The notes under the pieces are model-generated. The model saw only the letters and a list, made by a program, of their open reading frames with translations. It made no database searches and had not been told where the DNA came from. Below are positions 2,272 through 58,363 of a DNA stretch of 64,000 bases, piece after piece (the first letter of the stretch is position 1; each line of letters opens with the position of its first letter). The position numbers were made by a program, and so were the translations under genes. The stretch covers positions 186,001-250,000 of the IMG/VR virus record IMGVR_UViG_3300005537_000001; one strand, given 5' to 3'.

Positions 2272-2307
2272 AAAGGGACTCCTTTAACCGGGAGTCCCTT
2301 TTTGTTT
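2272..2307 (+). terminator. intrinsic terminator
   Basis: AAAGGGACTCC-N8-GGAGTCCCTTT stem followed by TTGTTT. Confidence 0.85.
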
Positions 2308-2317
2308 AGATCCTGAA

Positions 2318-2323
2318 TAAATA
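2318..2323 (+). promoter_or_regulatory. late promoter TAAATA heading the 2357-9713 cluster
   Basis: Motif lies directly after the terminator and 33 nt before the ATG. Confidence 0.6.
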
Positions 2324-2356
2324 CGTAGCGTACTTTACCATCAGGATCATCACTAA

Positions 2357-4228
2357 ATGAAACTCTTTGACATATTTGAAGCTGAAATCGCTACAAAGAA
2401 CGTTAGCGTCGCGCTTCCCAAGATAGCTTCATATCTTGCTAGAAAGCTTGGCGTTAAGCTTCTTCGAGTTCCTGGAGTTGAGCACTTCCACAACTCAGAT
2501 GGAAATGGTTACGGCGTACGCTACATAGTTTCTGGTGGTACCCGCTGCTTCAGAATAAACTGGAATACCGAAGGTAGCGTAGGACAGATTGCTAGCATTC
2601 ATTCGTTCGACATCTTCAACGGTACGTCCCATGATCCGACGTTTACCATTCACACCAAAGGCATCAACTTCGCCCACGCTTTACCAATGGTCGTAGCGAT
2701 AGCTCGTTCACCAGCCCTTGGTCGCCACTACATGTTTCCAGTTGACCCAAAGCTAGCTCTTACTGAAGGCGTTGTCACAGAGGTCGACAAGCCAAACGCA
2801 TTCAAAGAGGCGCTAAAGGTTAAGTGTCCGCTCTGCAAGGCAGAACCCGGTAAGGGTTGCGTAGGCGTGAGTGGTTGGCGCAAGGGCAAACAGCTTAGCA
2901 CCCTTCACAACGAGCGCCTACGAGCAGCTGGGTTTGGCACTCAAATAACGGAGTCAATTGTTGGTAAAAATGTTAGCGTGACATTTACGCATGATGACAA
3001 GCATCGTGGATCCATAGTTGACGCTGTAAGAATCAGAGCTAAAGATGATAAGGACGCTCGTAGAATATTCGATGAGGAATTTTCAAAGAATTATAAAAAT
3101 CCAAAAATCACCCGTATTCTTTTTCATTACCCGATGAAGCCAATGAAAGAAGCTTTGAACGAAGCGCATCGCGATGACTTCACCGCCGAAGAAGCTCTCA
3201 CCGACTTCTTGAAGCAGCTTGCCCAAGGTAAGACGATGACCCGTTCCGACTTCATCGGTCAGTATCACATCGTCAACGCCGGCATCTTCGACACCGTATT
3301 CAACAACTTCAAGGATAAATTTCGCATCGAGCAAAAACGAGTAGCGCTCGCGTCTAATACTAAGCTTGAAGCACTCAAGGATTCCATCCTCTCCAAGGCA
3401 GGAATCGTCGAAGTTACGAAGGGTGGCACCAAGGAAATTTACCTCAAGGGAGCTCAGGAAGAGCAGGTGGAAAAGGAAGCTGGTGATCGAGTTCCCTACG
3501 AAGACACTCTCGAGCACCTTGAAGGTCTCGTGGTGGCGCTCATCAAGGGTTCTACAAACGCCCTGTTTGTAGCTGGTAAGGGTGGCACCGGTAAAACTCA
3601 GACCGTAGAGCGCGTTCTCCACGCGGCTGGTTTATCGGATGGTAAGGGATACTTCAAGAATTCCGGTTCGGCATCAGCTTCTGGCGTCTACACTTTACTT
3701 TATCACCACCGTAATGATATAATTCTATTCGATGACTCTGACGGTGCTCTTCGAGACACAGACGCGCGCAACCTTATCAAGGCGGCCACCGACACGAAGA
3801 AGGTTCGTAAGCTTGTTTGGAACAAGAAATCATCCTTCATTTTCAATCCAGAAGAAGAGGATCCAGAAGCATATGAAGACGATCTTGGTATGGCACCTCA
3901 ATACTTTGACTTCAAAGGCCGAATCATTTTTATTTCTAACTTGTCACTCGATCAACTGGATCCCGATGGAGCCCTTCGTACCCGCGCTTTCGTTATCAAC
4001 GTTGATCCTACTGATGAAGAGCTGGTAAGCCACATGGGCAAAATCCTCATGGACATCAAGCTTGAGGATGGATTGGTTCTTGACAAGGCAGCTCGCGAGC
4101 ACGTGCTTGAAGTGGTTAAAACATCCAAGCGCAAGGGAGCTGTATCTCTCCGAATGTTGGTACGCGCGCTAAATCTCGCGGCCTCGGGAGCTCCCAACTG
4201 GGCAAAACTAGTTGAGCTGTACGCATAA
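2357..4228 (+). CDS. multidomain protein with a CPxC zinc-finger insert and a C-terminal AAA+ ATPase
   Basis: Walker A GKGGTGKT, Walker B IILFDDSD, FISN sensor and ALRTR finger; CPLCKAEPGKGC...H zinc finger; MKLFDIFEAE N-terminus. Confidence 0.8.
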   Translation: MKLFDIFEAEIATKNVSVALPKIASYLARKLGVKLLRVPGVEHFHNSDGNGYGVRYIVSGGTRCFRINWNTEGSVGQIASIHSFDIFNGTSHDPTFTIHTKGINFAHALPMVVAIARSPALGRHYMFPVDPKLALTEGVVTEVDKPNAFKEALKVKCPLCKAEPGKGCVGVSGWRKGKQLSTLHNERLRAAGFGTQITESIVGKNVSVTFTHDDKHRGSIVDAVRIRAKDDKDARRIFDEEFSKNYKNPKITRILFHYPMKPMKEALNEAHRDDFTAEEALTDFLKQLAQGKTMTRSDFIGQYHIVNAGIFDTVFNNFKDKFRIEQKRVALASNTKLEALKDSILSKAGIVEVTKGGTKEIYLKGAQEEQVEKEAGDRVPYEDTLEHLEGLVVALIKGSTNALFVAGKGGTGKTQTVERVLHAAGLSDGKGYFKNSGSASASGVYTLLYHHRNDIILFDDSDGALRDTDARNLIKAATDTKKVRKLVWNKKSSFIFNPEEEDPEAYEDDLGMAPQYFDFKGRIIFISNLSLDQLDPDGALRTRAFVINVDPTDEELVSHMGKILMDIKLEDGLVLDKAAREHVLEVVKTSKRKGAVSLRMLVRALNLAASGAPNWAKLVELYA

Positions 4229-4707
4229 TGAATCTATCTGAAATATTTAATTCGCGCGCTGACGTTGATTGGACTAGTGGATTTGGAAAATTCACGCTAG
4301 ACAACGTTACATATGGGATTTCAGCCGTGAAAGATAGTCTTGGGGATATAAGCGGGCTTGAAATATTTTTCTATACAGTTGACGATAAACATAGAAAAAT
4401 GGAGCTGACAAAACTTGATCAAAACCAATTTAAAGTTATAGGCATCGTTAAAAATGCGATTAAGCAGAAATTTCCAGGGGAAGAAGTTATTTGGTTTGTA
4501 GCAAAACATGGAATTGATGGTGAAGATATAACGCGCAGATCACATTTTTACGGGATGCTACTATCACGATTATCTAGAGAACTCAACTATCTTCAAATTT
4601 CCGGAATGTTCGGTACCGATCATGTTTATGTTCTATTCAAAGATCATTCACTACTCAGCGCGATAGCATCTAAGCTGGATAAAGTTGATGGAGAGTCAGA
4701 AGCATGA
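4228..4707 (+). CDS. hypothetical protein, putative virion-internal
   Basis: Coupled to the upstream gene; MNLSEIF N-terminus. Confidence 0.7.
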   Translation: MNLSEIFNSRADVDWTSGFGKFTLDNVTYGISAVKDSLGDISGLEIFFYTVDDKHRKMELTKLDQNQFKVIGIVKNAIKQKFPGEEVIWFVAKHGIDGEDITRRSHFYGMLLSRLSRELNYLQISGMFGTDHVYVLFKDHSLLSAIASKLDKVDGESEA

Positions 4708-5345
4708 AGCTCTTCGAAATACACAGTCCACCAGAAAAGCAGGATCTTCAGAAGCTTAGAAGCGTACTTTCTAAACCTCTTAGGCTCAAGAAATCAGACA
4801 CAAATGATTTTTATTCTGCCACGCTCTATGCAAATAGAGTGATGCATTGGGCTACGTCAATGTCTGGTACAGCTCGTTTAGATTTATCCACCATAGGTGA
4901 TGATCTACAATCTCTCATTATGCGCTTCACGTTAACGTGGTTTAAGAAAATAGTTGAAGAGCATGAAGGATCCAAGAAAAATTTACAAAACGATCTGCTT
5001 GATATCAAAAAGTGGATTCGCGATCTGAAATTTTCAAAATTTCCAACTGCAGAAATTGATGTGCTCTACAAAGCCATTTCTACACCCACAAAGAAAGTTA
5101 CTGAAGGCACAATTCCTGACGAAGAAATTACCATCACGATGGGTGTGAGGGGTGACGCTAAGCAGAAGATAGCTGAACTCCTTCACTACATCTCAAACGC
5201 ATGCTCGATGGGTTGCAGCCGCACCTGGGGTGTCGTCAATGGTGATCGAGATGAAGATTGGAAGGTTGACTTTGACGGTGATGGCGCGGATAAATTGGTC
5301 GATGTAAAGATTAATGGTCAGAAAGTTAAGGATTTCATGCGATGA
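4704..5345 (+). CDS. hypothetical protein, putative virion-internal
   Basis: MKLFEI N-terminus; divergent copy of the shared helical module. Confidence 0.7.
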   Translation: MKLFEIHSPPEKQDLQKLRSVLSKPLRLKKSDTNDFYSATLYANRVMHWATSMSGTARLDLSTIGDDLQSLIMRFTLTWFKKIVEEHEGSKKNLQNDLLDIKKWIRDLKFSKFPTAEIDVLYKAISTPTKKVTEGTIPDEEITITMGVRGDAKQKIAELLHYISNACSMGCSRTWGVVNGDRDEDWKVDFDGDGADKLVDVKINGQKVKDFMR

Positions 5346-5716
5346 AGCTGGAAGAACTTACGGCGCATCCATGCCGTTGGTCACTAGCTTTTGAAGGCAA
5401 CATGTCGCGCTATTACGGATCTGATGGCGTCGATATGAAGAAGTTGAAGCGAGCAATTTCGAACAAGTTTGATGATCTAGATGCTAAAACGCAGGATGCC
5501 TTGGTAGGTATCTATCACTGGTTAGAATTGAACGAGAAGGATTTAACCAGCAAGAAGAAGGTAATTGCGACGCTGTTAGGATTTTACAAGATGATTGATC
5601 ACAATGATACAGCCGACTATGACATCGTGAAGCAGCTAATTGAAAATTTTAGGACGTTGGGAATAGATTATCCAGAATTCAAGTCGATTGAGAAAAGTAT
5701 GGAGAGCCAGAAATGA
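5342..5716 (+). CDS. hypothetical protein with shared xPEF module
   Basis: C-terminal FRTLGIDYPEFKSIEKSM. Confidence 0.75.
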   Translation: MKLEELTAHPCRWSLAFEGNMSRYYGSDGVDMKKLKRAISNKFDDLDAKTQDALVGIYHWLELNEKDLTSKKKVIATLLGFYKMIDHNDTADYDIVKQLIENFRTLGIDYPEFKSIEKSMESQK

Positions 5717-6546
5717 GTTTAATTCAACAGTTGCTCGAAGCGCTGATGGGCCAAAAGCAGAAGCGGCTCGAGTTTCTAGTGCAAACCTACGCTCCCAAAT
5801 GGAAAGGCGTTGAGGGCTACAAGGACATTGAGAAATTCGTTGAGCGCGTCGGCACGCTCGACCCATCCCACAATGGTGCGTACATGCAGTGGATGATGAA
5901 GCTGGTGCTAAAGGATCCACACGAGAACAAGGTAGAGGATCTCGAGCGAGTTGCCGGTGATCTCAAGACGTTCGAAGAAAATAAGGCGCGCATCCAAAAC
6001 AAGGATGTCAATTCCTACAAGAGTTTCCAGGAACTGTTCAACGTAATCGAGCCATTCACCAAGCCCCGTGAAAAGAGCAAGGAAGAGCTTGAGATGGATA
6101 AGGATCTCGAGAAGCGAGAGAAAATTCGCAAGGACATCGATACCGTTTACGAAGGCCCAGAAGGTTGGATTAAAATTCCAATGACCAAGCAGGCATCGGT
6201 GTACCTTGGTCAACACACCCGCTGGTGCACCGCCGCGACGCAGTCAAGCAACATGTTCGACAGCTACAACAAGCGCGACAAGCTTTTCGTCATCTACGAC
6301 AAGGAAAAGAAAACGCGTACCCAGCTCCACGTTCAAGGAGGAGAATACCGCGACGAGAAGGATGCCTACATCGGCGTGTCAAAGCTTCCAGGCTGGGCTG
6401 GCAAGGCGATCGTTGCGTGGTACAAGAAGAATCCTGAGAAGATGGGACTGAAGCACGTCATGACTCTCGGCTCTCACGACCCGTCAATCGCTAAGGGTAC
6501 GCAGCACGAAGACGTTCTGAAACTAATGCAAAAATATGGGGTTTAG
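5713..6546 (+). CDS. hypothetical protein with a TRWCTA motif (PcfJ-like domain, tentative)
   Basis: ASVYLGQHTRWCTAA..NMFDSY motif; family call from memory of large-phage proteins. Confidence 0.55.
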   Translation: MSLIQQLLEALMGQKQKRLEFLVQTYAPKWKGVEGYKDIEKFVERVGTLDPSHNGAYMQWMMKLVLKDPHENKVEDLERVAGDLKTFEENKARIQNKDVNSYKSFQELFNVIEPFTKPREKSKEELEMDKDLEKREKIRKDIDTVYEGPEGWIKIPMTKQASVYLGQHTRWCTAATQSSNMFDSYNKRDKLFVIYDKEKKTRTQLHVQGGEYRDEKDAYIGVSKLPGWAGKAIVAWYKKNPEKMGLKHVMTLGSHDPSIAKGTQHEDVLKLMQKYGV

Positions 6547-6547
6547 C

Positions 6548-7462
6548 ATGAGTTTATCCAAGTACGCGCTGTTTATCGAGGCGGCCCAGAAGAAGGGTGA
6601 CACCAGGCCACAAGCTAAGGCCGGCACCAAGGAACGTGAGAAGATAAACAACCTAGATGACCTTCTAGGCGGCCCAAAATCGAAGGGAAGTCTCGCAAAG
6701 CCAGAACCTAAAGTTGAACCAAAATCGGCTGGAGCTGCAAAGCTTAAGGCTGCCGGTGCCGAGAAAACTAGCTTCAAGGCAGCATCAGCAACTATCGACG
6801 CAAGCAAGGCACCACGATTTAACCCTGATGAGATAGATACCAGTCAAGAAACGGATGACGTTGAAGCTTCTCACAGCGTTGGTCATTCTACAGCTGGACA
6901 CAAACCAAAACCGGTAACACCTAACACGCTCCCTGCCGTAATCTCAAAGGCGCTCACCACGATTGGTAAGGATGTCGCAAACATCGAACCAGAGTGGCAC
7001 ATGGTAAAGCATCTTCCTGGCTACATGTCAAAGGCGATCCGGGCGCTCGGGCGGCAGGTATTCTCTCCATTCACCAACACAAAGATAGAAGATATTCAAG
7101 TTGTCGCTCACGTTGGCGGTGGACCAAATACTGAAGCTGAAGTTAACGCGGTGTCCAAGTATGTTTCTGGACATGGTACCCGCGATAAAACTGCTGAGCT
7201 TGCCTTTCAAAAGGTTCTTCCAGACTACAAGGCACAGGTTGTTTCCTACAACTGCGATGGCATCACGTTCTTCATGGTGAAGGATTTCGCTGGCCACTAC
7301 ATCTACGCGTGGCCGCAGTCAGATAGCAAGGACGTTGGTGGAACAGCTCAGGCTGGAATAGAACACTCGCGTCAAGCAAGAGCCGAGCTAACTCACGATC
7401 GCAAGCTTATCGGTCATGATACCGACGACTTGAAAGATCTCATGTCAAAATACGGACTATAA
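6548..7462 (+). CDS. hypothetical protein with a K/A/P-rich N-terminal region
   Basis: ATG 6548 follows the upstream stop; long ORF with phage-like codon use. Confidence 0.75.
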   Translation: MSLSKYALFIEAAQKKGDTRPQAKAGTKEREKINNLDDLLGGPKSKGSLAKPEPKVEPKSAGAAKLKAAGAEKTSFKAASATIDASKAPRFNPDEIDTSQETDDVEASHSVGHSTAGHKPKPVTPNTLPAVISKALTTIGKDVANIEPEWHMVKHLPGYMSKAIRALGRQVFSPFTNTKIEDIQVVAHVGGGPNTEAEVNAVSKYVSGHGTRDKTAELAFQKVLPDYKAQVVSYNCDGITFFMVKDFAGHYIYAWPQSDSKDVGGTAQAGIEHSRQARAELTHDRKLIGHDTDDLKDLMSKYGL

Positions 7463-7464
7463 CT

Positions 7465-8730
7465 ATGCTGGTTTCAGAACTCCTATACGAAAGCATAATC
7501 CTTGAGCATCTTGGTAACCTTGCTCAGCTGAAAGTTGGGGCCATGATCAACATCCTCAAGCAAACAGGCCACATGGGTAGTGGTTCTGGCAAGCGGGCGT
7601 CCGGACCATCAACGTCACCAATTGGCAGACGATTTGGTAATTCATATTCCGGATCGGAAATTGGCGCGAGCAGCAAAATAGTTGACGTGGGCGTCATCAA
7701 GGATGGCATCAAAGGTCTAAGGCAGGCGTTCAAAAAGCACAGCGAAGCCAAAGCCTTCGCGCTTTACGTTGGTGGTCACGCGGTAGCCTTTGGGTCATTT
7801 GACGCGCATGATTTAGGAGGGCAGGCGCGTGGAGGTCTATTCGCATATGATTTAACTTCTCTTGAATCGGAAGTCAACAAGGAGCACGAGGCCAATCTAG
7901 CCAAGCATAAAACGCAGAGCTGGACTACTCCACCAACTCGTCTTGCAACAAGCTCTTTTCACCGTAAGATGCCGGAAGGCACGCTTGTATACGCCGACGT
8001 TGCTGACAAGGACGAATTTATCAAGGGTCTGTTGAAGCTTGTAAGAGCTGAAAAATATGGGGCGGTGAAGGCAAGCATCATGCTTGCCAAAAAGGATGGC
8101 CACAAACTTCCCGAGTTTGACAGCATAATCAAGAGCGTTGAGCATTCTGAGAAAATCGAAAATCAGGATCGATACATCTCACGGTGGGACAGGGAGCGCG
8201 ATGAGGTCAAGAATTACCAGGGTAAGATTACATCTACCGGTGAGTTCATGCACTTTCTAACCAGACTCATTGTCTTGGCCGACAAGAAACCAATTACGGC
8301 TAAGTTGGTTGTGCGCGATCCGGATCTTTACCAGCTGCGCGTTGATCGCAATAAGCGCAGACCAGCTGAACTATCTACACAGCAGTCCCTTGAAGACCTA
8401 AAGATTCGGCTTACCAAGTTCAAGCTAGCCAAGAAACCAACGGTCAACTCCATCCATGAATTCATTGATGAAGCAAAGAAGAAGGTTCTCAAGGTTGTCC
8501 AATTTGACGGAAGAAGCTGGAGCACCATCCCTAAGAAAACATGGGATAGTGACAAAATAGCGCCAGAAGATTTACTTGCTGGAAGATCCTTCAAGCTAAG
8601 GTACAGCACCAAGGATCCAGGTGCCTACGAAAGCATTTACATCACCTACAAGTTTGACCCAAGCACAAGCACTATCGCGCCAATCAATGCCGAATGGTCC
8701 GGTAAGAAAGTTACTCTTGGTAAAGAATGA
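7465..8730 (+). CDS. hypothetical protein with shared xPEF module
   Basis: MLVSELLYE start; internal KDGHKLPEFDSIIKSV. Confidence 0.75.
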   Translation: MLVSELLYESIILEHLGNLAQLKVGAMINILKQTGHMGSGSGKRASGPSTSPIGRRFGNSYSGSEIGASSKIVDVGVIKDGIKGLRQAFKKHSEAKAFALYVGGHAVAFGSFDAHDLGGQARGGLFAYDLTSLESEVNKEHEANLAKHKTQSWTTPPTRLATSSFHRKMPEGTLVYADVADKDEFIKGLLKLVRAEKYGAVKASIMLAKKDGHKLPEFDSIIKSVEHSEKIENQDRYISRWDRERDEVKNYQGKITSTGEFMHFLTRLIVLADKKPITAKLVVRDPDLYQLRVDRNKRRPAELSTQQSLEDLKIRLTKFKLAKKPTVNSIHEFIDEAKKKVLKVVQFDGRSWSTIPKKTWDSDKIAPEDLLAGRSFKLRYSTKDPGAYESIYITYKFDPSTSTIAPINAEWSGKKVTLGKE

Positions 8731-9713
8731 TGAAAACGACTTTCAAAAAGTTCATGGGCGTTGATCGTCCGTTCGAACCTAAACCGTTACCACCTCCAAA
8801 GCAGCCGCATCCAGTTCCCAAGGGCTACAAGCGCGTCAAGGATGGAAGCTTCAACAAACTCGTGAAGATTGATGAGGTCTTTGCCCCACACCCATATTCG
8901 ACACATCTCCTTAACGCGCTTGAGCGTGGTATGTATTCAAAGGCGGAGGTGATGAAGGTTATACTCAAAAAGCTTAAAGATTACGGAGGTGATGACAGCT
9001 TTGGCAGTTTAACAAATCTTATCAAAGTATTCCGAGATGCCGGTCACAAATGGCCGGAATTCGATGCGATAGAGAGATCTTTGAAGGAAGAAACTCTTGA
9101 TGAGATTTCGCTCAAGCACGCCGCGGCCGCAACCGTTCTTGGTGCATCAATGCTCGCGCCAAAGCATACAGCTCACGCAACCGACGTCAACCCTCGCCGG
9201 CAAACATTTTCCCAAATGGTAGCCAAGCAGGCAGAAATGCCAAAGCTGGACGCTAAGGAAGAAAAGGCAGTTAATCAAATTGTCAAGCGCTACGGTGTCA
9301 ATGGTGAGCTGGCAGCGAAGGTTGTTCAGCTAGCTCAAAAATATGAGCACCCAGAATTTCCGAAGGCTAAGGATATCCTCGCGATAGTTGGCATTGAGAG
9401 CAGCTTCAACCCGAAGGCAAAATCCGGGTTGAAGAAAGATCCAGCAGTTGGGTTGATGCAGTTTAGACCTTCAGCTTGGAAGGTTGCAGATGCCAATGAC
9501 GTTGAGACGCAGATAAAGAAGGGGGCCGAAATTCTCAACACCTATTACCGTCATCTTTTCAGCCACAAAGATCGCGCGATACAGGCCTACAACATCGGGT
9601 TGGCAAAGTACAAGGAAGCAAGAGACAATCCCGAAGAAAACCAAGAAATTTTGGACGCTCAAAAGCGCTACCTGGACAAGTACAACCGTGAGGTTGTACA
9701 CTACGAGCTCTAG
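8727..9713 (+). CDS. lytic transglycosylase (SLT domain) with N-terminal cargo-like modules
   Basis: AIVGIESSFNP (catalytic Glu), AVGLMQ, AIQAYNIG; upstream AGHKWPEFDAIERSL. Confidence 0.85.
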   Translation: MMKTTFKKFMGVDRPFEPKPLPPPKQPHPVPKGYKRVKDGSFNKLVKIDEVFAPHPYSTHLLNALERGMYSKAEVMKVILKKLKDYGGDDSFGSLTNLIKVFRDAGHKWPEFDAIERSLKEETLDEISLKHAAAATVLGASMLAPKHTAHATDVNPRRQTFSQMVAKQAEMPKLDAKEEKAVNQIVKRYGVNGELAAKVVQLAQKYEHPEFPKAKDILAIVGIESSFNPKAKSGLKKDPAVGLMQFRPSAWKVADANDVETQIKKGAEILNTYYRHLFSHKDRAIQAYNIGLAKYKEARDNPEENQEILDAQKRYLDKYNREVVHYEL

Positions 9714-9759
9714 CTTCACCCATTTAACATAATGGTGTCATTTAACATAATGTGAAAAG

Positions 9760-9793: not shown

Positions 9794-10114
9794 ATGATGA
9801 AGACTCGGAAGCGACGTTCAGACCGTATGCACCTCATATACGCTCTGACGAACATGGCAACCAACGAAAAGTATGTAGGCATGGCGGTTTGCATCGATCG
9901 CTCCGGTAAGGAAACACTCGCCGCCCGCTGGTGCCGACACGTGGGTCGAGCGAAGCATCAGAACAAAAACTGGAGCTTGTGCAAGTCGATTCGAAAGCAC
10001 GGACCCCAAGCTTTCTCACAGGAAATTATCGAGTTCGTTCGCGGCAAAGCCGAAGCGCACGCTCGCGAAACTGAAATCAAGAAGACCGGAAAATACGCTC
10101 TCAACACGGCGTGA
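9794..10114 (+). CDS. GIY-YIG-like endonuclease (Seg-like, minimal)
   Basis: LIYALTN...YVG...RW..H...F...IIE...A...E. Confidence 0.7.
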   Translation: MMKTRKRRSDRMHLIYALTNMATNEKYVGMAVCIDRSGKETLAARWCRHVGRAKHQNKNWSLCKSIRKHGPQAFSQEIIEFVRGKAEAHARETEIKKTGKYALNTA

Positions 10115-13059: not shown

Positions 13060-13088
13060 TGTACTTGCTCAGGTTGATAGATTACAAT
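13060..13088 (+). promoter_or_regulatory. early promoter
   Basis: TGTACT-N17-TACAAT with ATTTAACATAA-type boxes upstream. Confidence 0.65.
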
Positions 13089-13122
13089 GTCTTCGTTGTT
13101 TGAACTACTGGAGATCGCTGAA

Positions 13123-14085
13123 GTGTCTAACGTTGCTCAACTCTCCCTGGATGGTCGGTCCAACAAATGGGTCGCTATCTTCGCAGGAAAGATTCTCGCC
13201 TCATCCCCCAACAAGGAATACGTCGTCAACAACATCCGAGCTGGTCGCTGCACCAAAGCGAATCAAGTACGCGTAACGGACGTCAAGGAAATCGGTGAAA
13301 CCGAAACCGTGACCAACGCGGTCGGCAAGGAAATCCAGCAGAAAGTGGACAAATTCGGAATCAACGAGCGGTTCGACTTCATGGAGGACTTCGTCTCCAT
13401 GGTCGCGGACCGAACCTCTCCTTCTCTTCTCGTAACCGGCGAGGGCGGTCTCGGCAAGACCTTCACGGTCAATAAAGCCCTTCGAACCAACAAGCTTCAG
13501 AAACTCGATCTTGAGGAGCTCACCGTTGGAGCTACCATCGACGACCACAAGTTCTACACGGTGGTCAAGGGGTACTCCACGGCAAAGGGCCTCTATCGGA
13601 CCCTCTGGGAAAATCGCAACCGACTGGTGGTCTTCGATGACTGCGACAGCGTCCTCCGCGATCCGGTCGCCCTCAACATCCTCAAGGGCGCTCTCGACTC
13701 CTACGACAAGCGCATCATCTCCTGGAACGCGGAATCCTTCGGAGACGACGATCTTCCCCGCTCCTTCGAGTTCAAGGGTGGAGTCATCTTCATCTCGAAC
13801 CTCCCAATCTTCAAGATCGACCAGGCGGTCCGCTCACGTTGCATCAGCGTGGACCTCTGCATGACCACGGCTCAGAAAATCGAGCGCATGGAAATGATCA
13901 TCAAGGGAGACGAGTTTCTCCCTGAGGTGGACATGAAAACCAAGCGCCACGCTCTGGACTTCCTCGAGAAGATGAAGGACGAAGCACGCGAGCTCTCCCT
14001 TCGAACCCTCATCGCGGTCACCAAGGTGGCTGCACGAGGTGGAGAATGGAAGCGTCGAGCCGAATATCTCCTCACGGCGGTTTAA
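13123..14085 (+). CDS. AAA+ ATPase, paralog of the 2357 ATPase domain
   Basis: GEGGLGKT, VVFDDCD, FISN, AVRSR. GTG start with GGAG RBS chosen because ATG 13087 overlaps the -10 box. Confidence 0.8.
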   Translation: MSNVAQLSLDGRSNKWVAIFAGKILASSPNKEYVVNNIRAGRCTKANQVRVTDVKEIGETETVTNAVGKEIQQKVDKFGINERFDFMEDFVSMVADRTSPSLLVTGEGGLGKTFTVNKALRTNKLQKLDLEELTVGATIDDHKFYTVVKGYSTAKGLYRTLWENRNRLVVFDDCDSVLRDPVALNILKGALDSYDKRIISWNAESFGDDDLPRSFEFKGGVIFISNLPIFKIDQAVRSRCISVDLCMTTAQKIERMEMIIKGDEFLPEVDMKTKRHALDFLEKMKDEARELSLRTLIAVTKVAARGGEWKRRAEYLLTAV

Positions 14086-14107
14086 CGGATACCACGGAGT
14101 TCGGACC

Positions 14108-14740
14108 ATGGCCACATCACGAAAAAAGCAGGAGCTGTACGACCAAGTATACACTCCCCGGGTCCAGCTGAAGGAAGCAATTCGGCTCCTTCAGCTGGCA
14201 GATCCGGATGACGCTCTGGATTACGACGAAAAAATAAAATGGCGTTCTGATCGAGACGCCATCGTCAAGGACGTCGTTTATGGGAGAAACGCACCCAAGA
14301 AAAAACCAACCCCACAAGCCAAAATCCAGCACCCATCGCTCGTCGAATACGTCAGCCGGATAAACTCTGGTCGCGTCGACAAGCTGGCGGTTAGGAGTCA
14401 GGATCTTACCCGAAACGACATCAACGTGATCGACGTGCAGATCGAAACCGATATGGCTTTGGTCGTCAACGGCACCAAGGCCAACAAGGTGTTCATGCAG
14501 AAAGTCATCAACGAGCTGGGTGCCTTGAAGCGGATGATGATCGAAACCGGCGGGAAGAGCTTCGATCGCCTCGCCCTGAAGGACTACCGCGATTTTCCAG
14601 ATGAGTGGAAAAAATTTCTCAGCGGTCCAGCGAGCGCCATCAACAAGATAAATCCGAGCCGTCAAGCTCGATTTTGGACTGGTGCGAGTTCGGAAGTCCG
14701 CACCGCCATCATGCAATCATCTCTTGGGAGAATAACATGA
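14108..14740 (+). CDS. hypothetical protein
   Basis: GGAG RBS before ATG 14108. Confidence 0.7.
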   Translation: MATSRKKQELYDQVYTPRVQLKEAIRLLQLADPDDALDYDEKIKWRSDRDAIVKDVVYGRNAPKKKPTPQAKIQHPSLVEYVSRINSGRVDKLAVRSQDLTRNDINVIDVQIETDMALVVNGTKANKVFMQKVINELGALKRMMIETGGKSFDRLALKDYRDFPDEWKKFLSGPASAINKINPSRQARFWTGASSEVRTAIMQSSLGRIT

Positions 14741-20869: not shown

Positions 20870-21421
20870 CTAATCAAGAGACTTGCTGGCTGACATGCTC
20901 TTCTGTATGGCCTTAAGCTCAGGCCAATTATGCACTTTTTCTAGCGAGTGAAGTAAAGCTGATAAAAACATTTTGGAATCCTCTAAACCAAACCAAAATG
21001 TGCCATGTTCAGAATCGGCATCAACAACTTCTCGATATTTTGCCAACAGTATTTTTATCGTCTTTTCTTTATCTTCGGTACTACCGAGCGCGGCCCGAAC
21101 AAAATCAGCATCGTTGAGCACCTCTATTTCAAAGGGCGGAGTTTCCTCAAGCTGTGAACGTACGATGAAGCATGGTCGTTTACCTCTTAACCATATCACC
21201 GAAACATTATTATTCGCCCCACCATGTTTGGCGTAATATGTTACTTGTTGAGAATTGACGTCGAAACCAGAATTCGTGCGGCCATTCCAACTGTAAAGCG
21301 TACCATCATAATCTATTTCATCTGGGCGCATCGCCATTCCACCACCGACAGTTTCTGCAAATTCATCTAAAGTCTCAACAGAGATCATTTCGTGTGATTC
21401 GAGAAATTCTTTGAATTTCAT
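20870..21421 (-). CDS. hypothetical protein with C-terminal WPEL module
   Basis: MKFKEFLE start at 21421 (ATGA overlap); HNWPELKAIQKSM. Confidence 0.75.
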   Translation of the reverse strand: MKFKEFLESHEMISVETLDEFAETVGGGMAMRPDEIDYDGTLYSWNGRTNSGFDVNSQQVTYYAKHGGANNNVSVIWLRGKRPCFIVRSQLEETPPFEIEVLNDADFVRAALGSTEDKEKTIKILLAKYREVVDADSEHGTFWFGLEDSKMFLSALLHSLEKVHNWPELKAIQKSMSASKSLD

Positions 21422-22005
21422 ATCGTTTTCCCCATCCAAAAAATTCTGCCAATGTTAACGTGCTTAGGATCTTTGTAAGTTTTCTCCGGAACCATTCCAA
21501 TCTTTCGAAGCGCCGAGAAAAATTTCTCATCGAGATGTCTAGCTCGAGTCTCACCGCGCGGCATGACGTGAACCGGAATTCTCTCTGTATCACCATTGAC
21601 CATTCTAATCGCGGTCATCCGCGCTCTACCTTCATGCCCAACTACTTCAACTCGCAGCGGTTCACCTTGACCAAATTCTTTTTCGTTGTATCTAAACTGG
21701 AGAAACGGAGCTCCAATTGGTATTCTATCCTTGATGTGTTCAGCTATTTTAGCCGCGGCGTCACCGCGATATCCCTGAGCTGCTAGCTCTAGAAATTCGG
21801 ATGGTGTGATTGTCATCGCGAAGCCGAAGTATTTGATTTCTTGGTTATTGGGAACTGCTCCCATTCCATCCTTGTTGTCGAACGCTACCTTGCCTACCTT
21901 GTAGCGATCGTCGACGTTCTTCGCGTCTGGCGCGGAGAGATGCTCGAATTCTGTTTCAGACAGATTCTTGTAATCAAACGTTTCGAAGAGTTCTCTAACT
22001 TTCAA
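21418..22005 (-). CDS. hypothetical protein, putative virion-internal
   Basis: TTG start with GAGGTG RBS; TAAATA at 22029-22034; MKVRELFE. Confidence 0.75.
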   Translation of the reverse strand: MKVRELFETFDYKNLSETEFEHLSAPDAKNVDDRYKVGKVAFDNKDGMGAVPNNQEIKYFGFAMTITPSEFLELAAQGYRGDAAAKIAEHIKDRIPIGAPFLQFRYNEKEFGQGEPLRVEVVGHEGRARMTAIRMVNGDTERIPVHVMPRGETRARHLDEKFFSALRKIGMVPEKTYKDPKHVNIGRIFWMGKTI

Positions 22006-42569: not shown

Positions 42570-43529
42570 ATGAATGACAAGAAGCTAGGTGCCATCTACG
42601 GCGCCCTTATCGGCGACGCCACTGGCTGTCCCTACGAATTCAACAGCCCTGAAAAGCTACCCCATCCCGACGAGATCGACATGTTTCCTCCGTCATGGTG
42701 GGAGTGCGCGTATCCCAACGTAAAGCTTGGGACCTACACCGACGATGGAGCTCAAACCCTCTGCCTGCTCGAGTCCCTCATCGAGGGAGGAGACCTCATC
42801 ACGGTGCTTCGAACGAAGCTGCAGAAGTGGCTGCACGAAGGCTACATGGCGGTTGACAGCTACGTGTTCGACGTGGGTAGCCAAACTCGCGCCGCGCTGC
42901 TAACGAAAGATCACACGAAGGTCTTTGCCGAAGAAGCTTCAAACGGTAACGGCGCGCTGATGCGCTGCATTCCTGTCGCGGTAATGGCTCAGTCAGAAGA
43001 TTACGCGATCACCATCGCGATGGAACAAGCCAAGGCTACCCACCCCCACATGTGGTCCCAGCTGACGTGCGCGGCATATGCCCTCATCGGATATTGGATG
43101 ATACGCGGTCACAAGATCACGATATCCGATTGCGTTGGGGCTCCAGTGGAGCAGGTGGTCAGCGACGCTGAATCGCTCATCATTCCAGCCTTCAGCCTGC
43201 TGCAGCGCAAGTTCCCAGAACATCGTCAGCACCTCGCATACATCTATAACTACCGCTATACCGAACCAACCGGCACCGGCTTCGTCGTTGATGCCTTCTG
43301 GTCGGCGCTCTTCGCGCTTCGAGTCGGTGATACGTATGAGAAGGTGATAAAGAGAGCCATCGAGCTTGGGCACGATACCGATACTACCGCGTGCATCGCC
43401 GGCGGGTTGGCAGGCATCAAGTTTGGAATGGCAGGAATACCGCGAAGGTGGATTGATGGACTGCGCGGTAGGGAGCTAATCGATTCGCTAGCGGCACGTG
43501 CGTCCCTCGGAGTAGAGGTCAACGAGTAG
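42570..43529 (+). CDS. ADP-ribosylglycohydrolase (DraG/ARH family)
   Basis: GALIGDATG, GTYTDDG, SNGNGALMR, TH, GHDTDTTACIAGGLAG. Confidence 0.92.
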   Translation: MNDKKLGAIYGALIGDATGCPYEFNSPEKLPHPDEIDMFPPSWWECAYPNVKLGTYTDDGAQTLCLLESLIEGGDLITVLRTKLQKWLHEGYMAVDSYVFDVGSQTRAALLTKDHTKVFAEEASNGNGALMRCIPVAVMAQSEDYAITIAMEQAKATHPHMWSQLTCAAYALIGYWMIRGHKITISDCVGAPVEQVVSDAESLIIPAFSLLQRKFPEHRQHLAYIYNYRYTEPTGTGFVVDAFWSALFALRVGDTYEKVIKRAIELGHDTDTTACIAGGLAGIKFGMAGIPRRWIDGLRGRELIDSLAARASLGVEVNE

Positions 43530-52927: not shown

Positions 52928-53638
52928 ATGCTGATACAAGATCTACAATCAATTCTAACCGAAGCTCAGGCTCGGCTGTACGCCGGCTGGGTTGGAGCTC
53001 GATCCCACAACTCTTCGGCTATTCACATTTTTATTCCAGATCATAATCATCCGGGTAATAGCCCTAGCAGCCCAATATATGTTTATCCAGGCTTACCATT
53101 TTCAGCTAGTAACGGTGCTCCAGGTACAACAGCTCCAGCTGGAACGAAGGTGTCAATCGGTGGTAAAACAAGCATCAAGGAATTTATCAATTCTGACTAT
53201 GGGATTCGGATGTACGGTCCGTTCATCAAGTTGATTAAATCCCAAAAGATTACAGATCAACAGCTACTTGATTTTGGCGCCAACATCTTAGCGCAAGTTA
53301 TCGCGAGCGGCGCCGACGAGGATAAATATTTTTCGTTTAAAGCCAAGCTACCGACCCAAGATGATATCATTCGGGGAATTCTCAAGATTTACAAGGATGA
53401 GCCCAAGGAGGTTAAGAGATTTATCTCCAACGCCAAGAAGCTTGGGTACAAGATTCCAGACGACGTGCTTGGAGCGATCTCAAAGTCGATCACCCACACT
53501 CGCAAGACTGAGGAGGCGGCGCGTCATGATAGCGCCGTCGCGGCGGCAAAGTCAGCTTTAGATAGAGCGCACCAGCGCCACGAGGATGCGGTTGCACGGC
53601 GTAACGCCTTCTTGAAGAAACACGGATTAGAAAGCTAA
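52928..53638 (+). CDS. late hypothetical protein with shared helical module
   Basis: TAAATA at 52917-52922, 5 nt before the ATG; MLIQDLQSILTEA; KLGYKIPDDVLGAISKS. Confidence 0.75.
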   Translation: MLIQDLQSILTEAQARLYAGWVGARSHNSSAIHIFIPDHNHPGNSPSSPIYVYPGLPFSASNGAPGTTAPAGTKVSIGGKTSIKEFINSDYGIRMYGPFIKLIKSQKITDQQLLDFGANILAQVIASGADEDKYFSFKAKLPTQDDIIRGILKIYKDEPKEVKRFISNAKKLGYKIPDDVLGAISKSITHTRKTEEAARHDSAVAAAKSALDRAHQRHEDAVARRNAFLKKHGLES

Positions 53639-57513: not shown

Positions 57514-57783
57514 ATGCTACTCAAAGATTTGCTTGTGTACGAAGAAACAAAGTCAGCTGCCGTCCACCCGCACACGGAAACTCTCTCCAAGCTAATTCAC
57601 GACATTCGAAATCCGCTCGGCGCGATCTTAACGACGAACCGGATGCTAGCTTCTGGTGTGTCTGACGAAAGTCTTTTCAAGTTTATTGAGCTACAGGATG
57701 TAGCGTGCCGGGAGATAAAAGAGCTGCTGCGGGTCGCGGCTGAAACCTTACCAGCTAAAGCTAATTGGCTGAAGAAAACCTAA
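57514..57783 (+). CDS. stand-alone histidine kinase dimerisation/phosphoacceptor (HisKA/DHp)-like protein
   Basis: LSKLIHDIRNPLGAI H-box, second helix, no ATPase domain. Confidence 0.75.
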   Translation: MLLKDLLVYEETKSAAVHPHTETLSKLIHDIRNPLGAILTTNRMLASGVSDESLFKFIELQDVACREIKELLRVAAETLPAKANWLKKT

Positions 57784-57796
57784 GCTGGAGCGTCAC

Positions 57797-58363
57797 GTGA
57801 ATTTACATCAACTTCTAGAAGCAGCAGCTCCAACATTTGATAATTTGACAGGTAAAGACATTGGGCTTCATCCACACATATTTGGGGCTCCATTCGTGGC
57901 TGTCAGGTGGAAGATAGGTGGAAATAATGGGCAAGCCCTCGTGGATTTCCCGGCTGGTAAGCCGCCCATCGTATCAACGCGCGGCGAAGATACAGAGCGA
58001 GCATTCATAGCAGCAAATAAAAGCCTACTGATAGATTTTGCAAGTAACCTACTGCTGCAGGCGGTCGCGCTAGGTACTGATTTCACAGGTGCCCGCGATC
58101 GCCCATCGAAATATAAACCGGTATCAAGTCAGGCCTTGGCGCGCGGAATTTTATCGTGGTACAAAACAGTTAACCATAAAATGATGACCAATCTGCTTGC
58201 GACAGTTAAGGCGGTGGGTGGTCATCTACCAGCTGACGTTGTAGCCGCTGTGGGAAAGAGCATTGGCGTTACTCGTGTCGTGGAGCTTAAAAAGCGAATC
58301 GCGTCAACTAAAGCTAGTCTTGCTAAAATGGAAGCCGAACTAGCGGAGCTGGAAGCAAAATAG
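57797..58363 (+). CDS. late hypothetical protein with shared helical module and coiled-coil tail
   Basis: MNLHQLLEAA; KAVGGHLPADVVAAVGKS. Confidence 0.7.
   Translation: MNLHQLLEAAAPTFDNLTGKDIGLHPHIFGAPFVAVRWKIGGNNGQALVDFPAGKPPIVSTRGEDTERAFIAANKSLLIDFASNLLLQAVALGTDFTGARDRPSKYKPVSSQALARGILSWYKTVNHKMMTNLLATVKAVGGHLPADVVAAVGKSIGVTRVVELKKRIASTKASLAKMEAELAELEAK

Follow-up and report, generated by a model that had tools for sequence, protein, structure and literature searches.

In the bacteriophage T4, late promoters have the form TATAAATA and are read by gp55. The T4 protease gp21 cleaves after L/I-x-E, and the first 10 residues of the internal protein IPIII are enough for targeting (PMC9026906). 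In phiKZ, 201phi2-1 and SPN3US, propeptides are removed after Glu by a diverged gp21-like protease, gp175/gp245 (PMC9026906). Here, an operon of eight genes located at positions 2318-9713 of a window of 64,000 nucleotides (nt) was analyzed; the window comprises bases 186,001-250,000 of the virus record IMGVR_UViG_3300005537_000001 (368,054 bp), and gene positions are those of the window unless marked "genome". The proteins of this operon begin with a short N-terminal tag that recalls the one of the T4 internal proteins. By analogy with T4, and with a probability of about 0.6, this tag would be a T4-like capsid-targeting and propeptide signal, carried on a late operon of a jumbo phage with a T4-type core.

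A Short N-Terminal Tag Linked to Late-Type Units

The main pattern of the tag, M-[KLNSRT]-[LVIF]-x-[EDQ]-[LIF], was found at the start of 32 of the 545 genes of the whole genome, a count made, like all the genome-wide counts, with a crude gene call of our own in which the choices of start were rough. When residues 2-12 were shuffled, 2.4 +/- 1.5 pattern starts were obtained, with a maximum of 8 in 500 shuffles, and at internal Met positions the pattern occurred at a rate of 0.3%; the motif is thus approximately 13- to 20-fold over-represented at N-termini. In the operon, seven of the eight proteins carry the main form or a near one, M-(K/L/N/S)-(L/V)-x-(E/D/Q)-(L/I)-(L/F)-E, and the product of gene 8 starts with a variant of the form MKT(F/Y)(K/Q)(Q/E)F. 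All of the thirteen N-termini quoted in the initial annotation of this region, eight in the operon and five elsewhere, were found at the places given for them. One of these examples of the motif, MKTTFKKF, is a real N-terminus, but it belongs to the second variant, which is even closer to the tag of the T4 internal proteins. In the genome, the tagged genes are clustered at 143-153 kb, 188-195 kb (this operon), 206-208 kb, 238-244 kb and 352-364 kb.

Furthermore, a clear association of the tag with a late-promoter-like word was observed. No 7-mer was more enriched upstream of genes than ATAAATA (55 occurrences for 5.7 expected, approximately 10-fold), and many genes of the head, tail and baseplate have it 28-62 nt ahead of them. 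Of the 37 tagged genes, 31 lay in units headed by (A/G)TAAATA, compared with 155 of the 508 untagged ones (odds ratio 11.8, p 2e-10); when whole units were counted, the word led 17 of the 21 tagged units and 55 of the 243 others (p 1e-7). An equal frequency of the motif in early genes, which the initial annotation had named as evidence against its proposal, was therefore not what was found, "early" meaning here the mere absence of the late word, since a strict sigma-70 pattern sought for the early units gave no matches.

T4-Type Head Genes and a Putative Cleavage-Site Signature

The record is a complete genome with direct terminal repeats and 48% G+C, from a jumbo myophage whose core is of the T4 type. 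Its head genes specify a gp23-type major capsid protein (PF07068, 314 bits), a portal (phrog_213) and an S77 head maturation protease (PF03420, 83 bits with a cut-off of 27; phrog_207, E 9e-53), the gene of the last, at genome 353265-353912, lying between the other two. T4-type topoisomerase II subunits are also encoded, as is, at genome 338546, a late sigma factor resembling gp55 (phrog_234, E 1e-25). Judged by the capsid protein, the closest cultured phages are Ralstonia phage RsoM2USA, with 61% identity, and Xanthomonas phage XacN1, with 55%; Pseudomonas phage PA5oct, with 43%, is farther off. By these sequence criteria the phage, whose capsid protein is T4-like, falls in the Rak2-related XacN1/RsoM2USA/PA5oct lineage and not in the nucleus-forming phiKZ lineage. 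The DNA of the operon gave no matches, at near or distant settings, in 50,697 phage records.

Tagged genes were most densely clustered in the stretch that holds the portal, protease and capsid genes and in the region directly following it. The first gene past the portal starts with MLVCELLE and the first past the protease with MLIQDLLNISE; MLVRELLE, MLVRELLQE, MLLEEL and MLTRELLSE are other starts of the head module. Five head-module genes at genome 354690-357513 and 364098-364685 (L017:4690-7513, 14098-14685) specify a second motif at the N-terminus, L(K/R)xLAG(I/L/M), with (I/L)-x-E after it; one of their products has an FMN-reductase domain, and its Pfam domain begins at residue 30, after an extension of 29 residues. 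No tag was found on the major tail and baseplate proteins, the sheath or the capsid protein. A papain-family cysteine peptidase gene also adjoins the head module (genome 364816-365583, L017:14816-15583; PF00112, E 4e-16).

The N-termini of T4 head proteins were read for comparison: gp24 starts with MAKINELLRE, gp22 with MLKEQLIAE, gp21 with MNEPQLLIE, gp67 with MEGLIE, and the products of ipII and ipIII with MKTYQEFIAE. In the phage studied here, the residue following the [LIFV]-x-E of the tag was Ala or Ser in 13 of 23 cases, compared with 15% at such sites elsewhere (p 8e-6), an enrichment that would match the Glu-Ala bonds of T4. Within the operon, I/L-x-E stands at residues 6-9 of the gene 1, 5 and 7 products, with Ala or Ser as the next residue, and the gene 6 product has F-I-E followed by Ala. 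The capsid protein itself contains five [LV]-x-E sites within its first 38 residues.

These data also bear on the possibility that the motif has no targeting role and reflects common descent, the shuffling of gene cassettes with a conserved 5' gene end as the recombination joint, or selection on translation initiation in late mRNAs. The operon is a variable cassette array, with three genes missing and one replaced in the related phage L025; several tagged proteins are paralogues of one another, and Lys at the second position is, as a matter of general knowledge, common in well-translated genes. Nevertheless, in an all-against-all comparison the majority of the tagged proteins showed no relationship to one another apart from the tag, the late proteins of highest abundance (sheath, capsid, baseplate) are untagged, and effects on initiation would leave the Ala/Ser enrichment after Glu unexplained. 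All of 20 orthologues of the gene 5 product (44-58% identity) keep Glu9, and Leu7 is almost invariant in them; the residues preceding these two vary in length and sequence. Orthologues of the gene 7 product start with MLVEELLTE, MLTYELFE or MLLEQIFLTE ahead of a conserved LGNLSQL block. Since orthologues keep the pattern, and those of gene 5 also the Glu, but differ freely in the sequence of the tag itself, selection seems to act on the peptide and not on the DNA. A motif of this kind, devoid of a targeting role, was considered quite improbable, and a capsid-targeting signal was preferred.

Tagged Proteins in the Virions of Related Phages

A homologue of the gene 5 product was identified in PA5oct, EST35_0205 (approximately 30% identity over 178 residues, E 6e-20), which starts with MKLFEVF and is annotated as "structural protein, ESI-MS/MS". 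Similar starts were found in the PA5oct virion proteins EST35_0150, 0230, 0238, 0349 and 0381; the starts seen in virion proteins of this phage include MKINDIITE (directly after the portal gene), MRLDEIQ, MKIKDILVE, MHLFELFDQIE and MKILEFNLTE, and the virion protein EST35_0203 starts with the second motif, MFNINDILRLAGV. In RsoM2USA, ORF89 (MKTFKQFLSE) and ORF132 (MKTFKQFLNTLME) form abundant virion bands identified by mass spectrometry, and their starts are very near the T4 tag; the start of gene 8, MKTTFKKFMG, is of the same type. RsoM2USA ORF438 was set aside as firm evidence, as its published mass of 51.7 kDa does not fit the GenBank open reading frame of 560 residues. The annotated start of this ORF438 (L029:14479-16161, minus strand), MLHRETLMLTFKQY, hides a tag-like internal start, MLTFKQYAQPILTE. 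In XacN1, the scaffold-like ORF275 (L030) starts with MKELLEKLLSSELLTEE, and the corresponding protein of the present phage starts likewise. The literature searched yielded no account of such tags in the XacN1/RsoM2USA/PA5oct lineage.

In related metagenomic phages, syntenic or analogous gene arrays were observed in which every gene is tagged, and the tagged proteins of L023 and L024 include a cell-wall hydrolase, a Pol-beta nucleotidyltransferase and a cytidylyltransferase-like protein.

The virion data and these enzymatic domains are relevant to another explanation, in which the tagged proteins would form the core or scaffold of the prohead and be degraded and expelled at maturation, like gp22, gp67 and gp68 of T4, and would be neither cargo nor effectors. 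The T4 core proteins share this kind of N-terminus, several of the tagged proteins are small orphans, and those with multiple copies of the repeat module described below resemble structural repeat proteins. Enzymatic domains such as AAA, SLT, FMN reductase, nucleotidyltransferase and cell-wall hydrolase would make poor sense in a disposable scaffold, however, and the PA5oct and RsoM2USA counterparts were found in mature virions. This explanation was judged very improbable, and the tagged proteins are better understood as candidates for packaging in the mature head.

The Operon of Eight Genes

The plus strand of the region 2300-9720 contains a single TAAATA/ATAAATA word, at 2317/2318, directly 3' of a terminator, and the eight genes, which lie end to end or share 1-4 bases with their neighbors, are translationally coupled (Table 1). 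They form, therefore, one operon with one promoter and not with eight: the TAAATA promoters that the initial annotation had placed before the N-termini are reduced to one ATAAATA leading the operon, while its proposal of a late-type operon of eight genes is borne out by indirect signs at the sequence level. We infer a late, gp55-dependent promoter of the TATAAATA type from the position of ATAAATA at 39 nt and from the gp55-like sigma factor encoded by the phage. Six of the eight proteins are basic, with an isoelectric point >8.3.

TABLE 1. Positions of the operon features and of other tagged genes in the window. A slash in an N-terminus stands directly after the Glu of the tag; PEF is the repeat module described in the text.
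Feature	Position	Strand	Length (residues)	N-terminus	Remarks
Intrinsic terminator	2272..2301	+			Ends upstream unit; 12-bp stem, 6 G-C pairs, T-run
T4-late-promoter-like ATAAATA (AATAAATA)	2317..2323	+			39 nt before first ATG
Gene 1	2357..4228	+	623	MKLFDIFE/AE	Zinc finger and C-terminal P-loop/AAA
Gene 2	4228..4707	+	159	MNLSEIF	No family; absent from L025 syntenic operon
Gene 3	4704..5345	+	213	MKLFEI	No family; absent from L025
Gene 4	5342..5716	+	124	MKLEEL	One PEF module, DNA 5555-5704; absent from L025
Gene 5	5713..6546	+	277	MSLIQQLLE/AL	Conserved family, invariant TRWCT...H...D
Gene 6	6548..7462	+	304	MSLSKYALFIEA (MSLSKYALFIE/AA)	Basic low-complexity N-terminal half
Gene 7	7465..8730	+	421	MLVSELLYE/S	One PEF module, DNA 7993-8142
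Gene 8	8730 (alternative 8727)..9713	+	327	(M)MKTTFKKFMG	PEF module, DNA 8937-9086; SLT domain
Sigma-70-like promoter TTAACA-16-CATAAT	9724..9751	+			Marks operon 3' boundary; precedes GIY-YIG gene
AAA paralogue of gene 1 C-terminal half	13087..14085	+		MSSLFELLE (MSSLFELLEIAE)	phrog_1250, E 1e-60
Tagged pair	20870..22005	-		MKVRELFE (22005), then MKFKEFLE (21421)	ATAAATA at -29; second with weak PEF match
Tagged gene	52928..53638	+		MLIQDLQSILTE/A	Paralogue of 57797-58363; weak PEF match
Tagged genes	57514..58363	+	89; 188	MLLKDLLVYEE (57514); MNLHQLLE/AA (57797)	GTAAATA at -35

The operon behaves as a variable cassette array, in which the flanks and four genes are kept in a related phage and the others are swapped. 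The syntenic region of that phage (L025) has, in order, ATAAATA, an ATPase starting with MKLVNLYE (the orthologue of gene 1), proteins starting with MSFALIIELLE, MRFKDFFE (the orthologue of gene 6), VLVKDLLIE (the orthologue of gene 7) and MKVNELLQE, and GIY-YIG; in addition to the three absent genes listed in Table 1, its last gene is different. The GIY-YIG homing-endonuclease-like gene located after the operon in the window (9794-10114) is found, with a similar promoter, after the L025 operon as well. On the other side, just before the terminator, a gene of 93 residues (1966-2247) is 68% identical to an identically placed L025 gene, and it is paralogous to the middle of a tagged PEF protein at genome 144543.

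The product of gene 1 has a phage zinc finger at residues 149-192 (PF24623, E 2e-7) and an AAA domain at residues 335-620 (phrog_1250, E 4e-32) with the Walker motifs GKGGTGKT (A) and ILFDDSD (B); the Pfam AAA_16 match was below the cut-off. The initial annotation had included an ATPase in an arsenal of injected effectors, and the P-loop/AAA domain is indeed real, but the status of the PA5oct homologue does not favor packaging (see section "Discussion"). Upstream of the AAA paralogue at 13087 no TAAATA was found, and GTTAAATGA occurs twice instead. For gene 5, the structural model is confident (predicted local distance difference test, pLDDT, 90), and no significant matches were obtained with Foldseek in the PDB; its neighbors in the AlphaFold DB are uncharacterized, DUF4116 or weakly PcfJ-like proteins, with template modeling scores of approximately 0.3. 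A GNAT-like assignment of residues 136-277 was rejected, because the resemblance reached only Z 5-6, below the trustworthy level. A scan of viral contigs with gene 5 gave no relatives. The start of gene 6 was set at 6548, within the longest open reading frame from 6536, because of its better ribosome-binding site. No matches were obtained by tblastn with the protein of 421 residues encoded by gene 7, and genes 2, 3, 4, 6 and 7, like the majority of the other tagged genes, were placed in no family by Pfam or PHROGs.

The product of gene 8 contains an SLT lytic transglycosylase domain at residues 215-305 (PF01464, 52 bits with a cut-off of 21.3, E 6e-14) with the catalytic Glu-Ser motif (GIESSF). 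The best PHROG match was phrog_342, "internal virion protein with endolysin domain" (E 3e-7). The wall-cutting domain that the initial annotation had described as a muramidase is thus present, but as an SLT lytic transglycosylase and not as a hydrolytic muramidase. A hydrophobic stretch precedes this domain; a cut at L-D-E, at approximately residue 126, would place this stretch at the N-terminus. From its sequence, gene 8 is a plausible candidate for a wall-cutting protein delivered together with the DNA.

Outside the operon, the tagged genes at 21421 and 57797 are the second ones in units led by those at 22005 and 57514, respectively, and the TAAATA located at -11 of the gene at 52928 is too close to be convincing. 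The product of the gene at 57514, previously proposed to be a DHp decoy, shows only a sub-threshold match to HisKA (22.1 bits with a cut-off of 26.9, E 1.6e-4). An ADP-ribosylglycohydrolase-like gene was also noted in the window at 42570-43529 (phrog_6572, E 2e-49).

The PEF Module

A module of approximately 48 residues, here named PEF, was detected by the all-against-all comparison, with the consensus kD..IK..L..lK...(variable)...ar..G.dYPEFk.IEKS.G. Within the operon it is present in genes 4, 7 and 8; another eight carriers are encoded elsewhere in the genome, and eight of the eleven are tagged. The carriers include a protein with three copies among the baseplate genes (genome 330962) and a protein with two copies beside the head module. 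An odd pairing was observed in a second gp55-like sigma paralogue (genome 177100-177594, L015:600-1094; Sigma70_r2, E 3e-8; phrog_234, E 3e-9), which has a C-terminal PEF module and a tag-like start, MYLDAVIE.

At E <= 1e-3, a profile search in 1.84 billion representative proteins yielded 397 proteins with PEF, which have as many as 12 repeats and reach lengths of >2000 residues, and the tag pattern starts 46 of the best 150. Nine large PEF proteins matched no Pfam family. PA5oct, the T4 head region and those parts of RsoM2USA and XacN1 that were retrieved gave no PEF. The AlphaFold model of a three-module protein (pLDDT 82) consists of a beta-hairpin and three helices per unit, and no PDB match to it was obtained. 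PEF is therefore a widespread module, new here and undescribed, without a Pfam family and co-occurring with the tag. As a guess, it could serve in docking to the scaffold or the capsid interior, or in DNA binding in the head. The (S/A)-I-E-K-S of the module was also considered as a phiKZ-type S/A/G-x-E cleavage site; this was rejected as the main reading, because the N-terminus of the capsid protein and the tags point to L-x-E and because the module folds as a domain. In the metagenomic contig L024 (518 kb), positions 1-20909 hold an array of >18 kb in which nearly every gene is tagged and has one to five PEF modules, including Pol-beta nucleotidyltransferase and cytidylyltransferase-like domains.

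The distribution of PEF is pertinent to the proposal that the tag is an interaction helix for some other late process, such as a chaperone, the tail or baseplate, or a late complex outside the virion; the operon proteins would then be late accessory proteins acting in the infected cell or outside the head. The tagged three-PEF protein is encoded among baseplate genes, PEF is also carried by the sigma paralogue, which is no obvious head protein, and SLT domains of myophages are often located in the tail tip or baseplate; gene 8 has a further match to phrog_2013 ("lytic tail protein"). The virion enzymes of XacN1 are, in addition, untagged. Yet the densest tag cluster lies among the portal, protease and capsid genes, the tag is built like the T4 propeptides down to the [LI]-x-E followed by Ala/Ser, the major tail and baseplate proteins lack it, and tagged proteins of PA5oct and RsoM2USA are found in virions. 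On balance, a role in another late process appears unlikely, and targeting to the capsid was retained as the preferred function of the tag.

Discussion

The resemblance of these N-termini to the capsid-targeting sequence of T4, as claimed in the initial annotation, receives indirect support from the S77 protease, from the concentration of tags in the head module and in late units, from the [LI]-x-E followed by Ala/Ser and from the orthologues, but it does not extend to homology with the T4 internal proteins. If the tag is a capsid-targeting and propeptide signal, the operon would be transcribed late from ATAAATA by RNA polymerase with gp55, and the eight proteins would be made by coupled translation. 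During prohead formation, the amphipathic helix of the tag would bind the scaffolding core, so that the protein is built into the prohead; the S77 (gp21-family) protease would then trim the tag after (L/I)-x-E and free the mature protein inside the head. The mature proteins would stay with the DNA, and some of these, at least, may leave with it at infection, the SLT protein acting on the cell wall and others on host processes. The proposed cargo comprises the zinc-finger AAA ATPase, the SLT transglycosylase, the weakly PcfJ-like gene 5 product with its Cys, His and Asp, and fast-evolving orphan proteins.

Several observations weigh against this interpretation. No match to the T4 internal proteins was found in Pfam or PHROG for any of the eight operon proteins, which would accordingly be analogues and not members of those families. 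Genes 2-4 have L-x-E only at residues 3-5, and gene 8 lacks it near the N-terminus. Gene 5 is the only operon gene with a homologue proven in virions, and PA5oct is distant, as indicated by the 43% identity of the capsid proteins. In PA5oct, 4 of 9 hits to the simple pattern were virion proteins, only a weak enrichment. The AAA family of gene 1 is widespread in T4-like phages, and its PA5oct member, EST35_0359, is untagged and was not detected in virions. In XacN1, the lipase (ORF279) and chitinase (ORF272) reported to be packed in virions carry no tag as annotated (L030), so a protein can enter the virion untagged. The late and early classes depend on a promoter-like word, and the gene calls and starts behind them are crude. 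The case for this phage is built throughout on analogy or statistics.

Most huge phages are available only as metagenomic sequence. If the proposal holds, the set of proteins packed and possibly injected by such phages would be predictable without culture, the fast-changing tagged cassettes would be prime candidates for host take-over and counter-defense, and the tag could be used as a cargo-loading signal in relatives infecting plant pathogens (Ralstonia, Xanthomonas) or Pseudomonas. The PEF module merits a family of its own. A broader and rather doubtful extension, advanced only tentatively, is that the tag and PEF mark proteins delivered with the capsid, a large unrecognized class within a clade of jumbo phages not yet cultured, with approximately 40 per genome, lengths reaching 2000 residues and as many as 12 repeats. 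The packaged or injected proteome would then be readable from sequence, including nucleotidyltransferases, FMN reductase, wall hydrolases and a gp55-like sigma factor injected to reprogram the host RNA polymerase.

Comparison With Known Systems

The nearest counterpart of gene 5, PA5oct EST35_0205, belongs to a cluster of virion-protein genes (EST35_0197-0210) located away from the head and tail modules. It is longer, with 482 residues compared with 277 for gene 5, and its neighbors are not homologous to the other operon genes. Gene 8 resembles the T7 gp16 type (phrog_342) in its SLT domain and in its best PHROG match. The match, however, covers only the SLT part of approximately 110 residues of a profile of 1235 positions, and in this small protein the tag, the PEF module and the hydrophobic segment replace the architecture of gp16.

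With phiKZ, 201phi2-1 and SPN3US the phage shares the jumbo size and, putatively, dozens of head-internal proteins, many of them in paralogous families. In those phages, in contrast, the cuts occur after S/A/G-x-E, the propeptides are longer and have no short common tag, and the proteins are not homologous to the ones described here.

The closest likeness is to IPI, IPII, IPIII and Alt of T4: a tag of approximately 10 residues, of the same design, is carried by unrelated fast-evolving proteins. Both systems have a protease of the gp21 family (S77) and a late promoter of the TATAAATA type, predicted here; (L/I)-x-E followed by Ala or Ser recurs in part of the tags as a putative cleavage site, the proteins are mostly basic, and the gene cassettes vary between related phages. 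The differences are that approximately 35-45 genes are tagged in this phage, compared with a handful in T4, that at least three tag variants (the MKLxELLE, MKTFKQF and LRKLAG types) are present, and that the proposed cargo includes large multi-domain proteins and the repeated PEF module. What is new relative to the T4-type systems is thus the scale, with approximately 40 tagged genes, the existence of several tag variants and the linkage of the tag to an undescribed repeat module.

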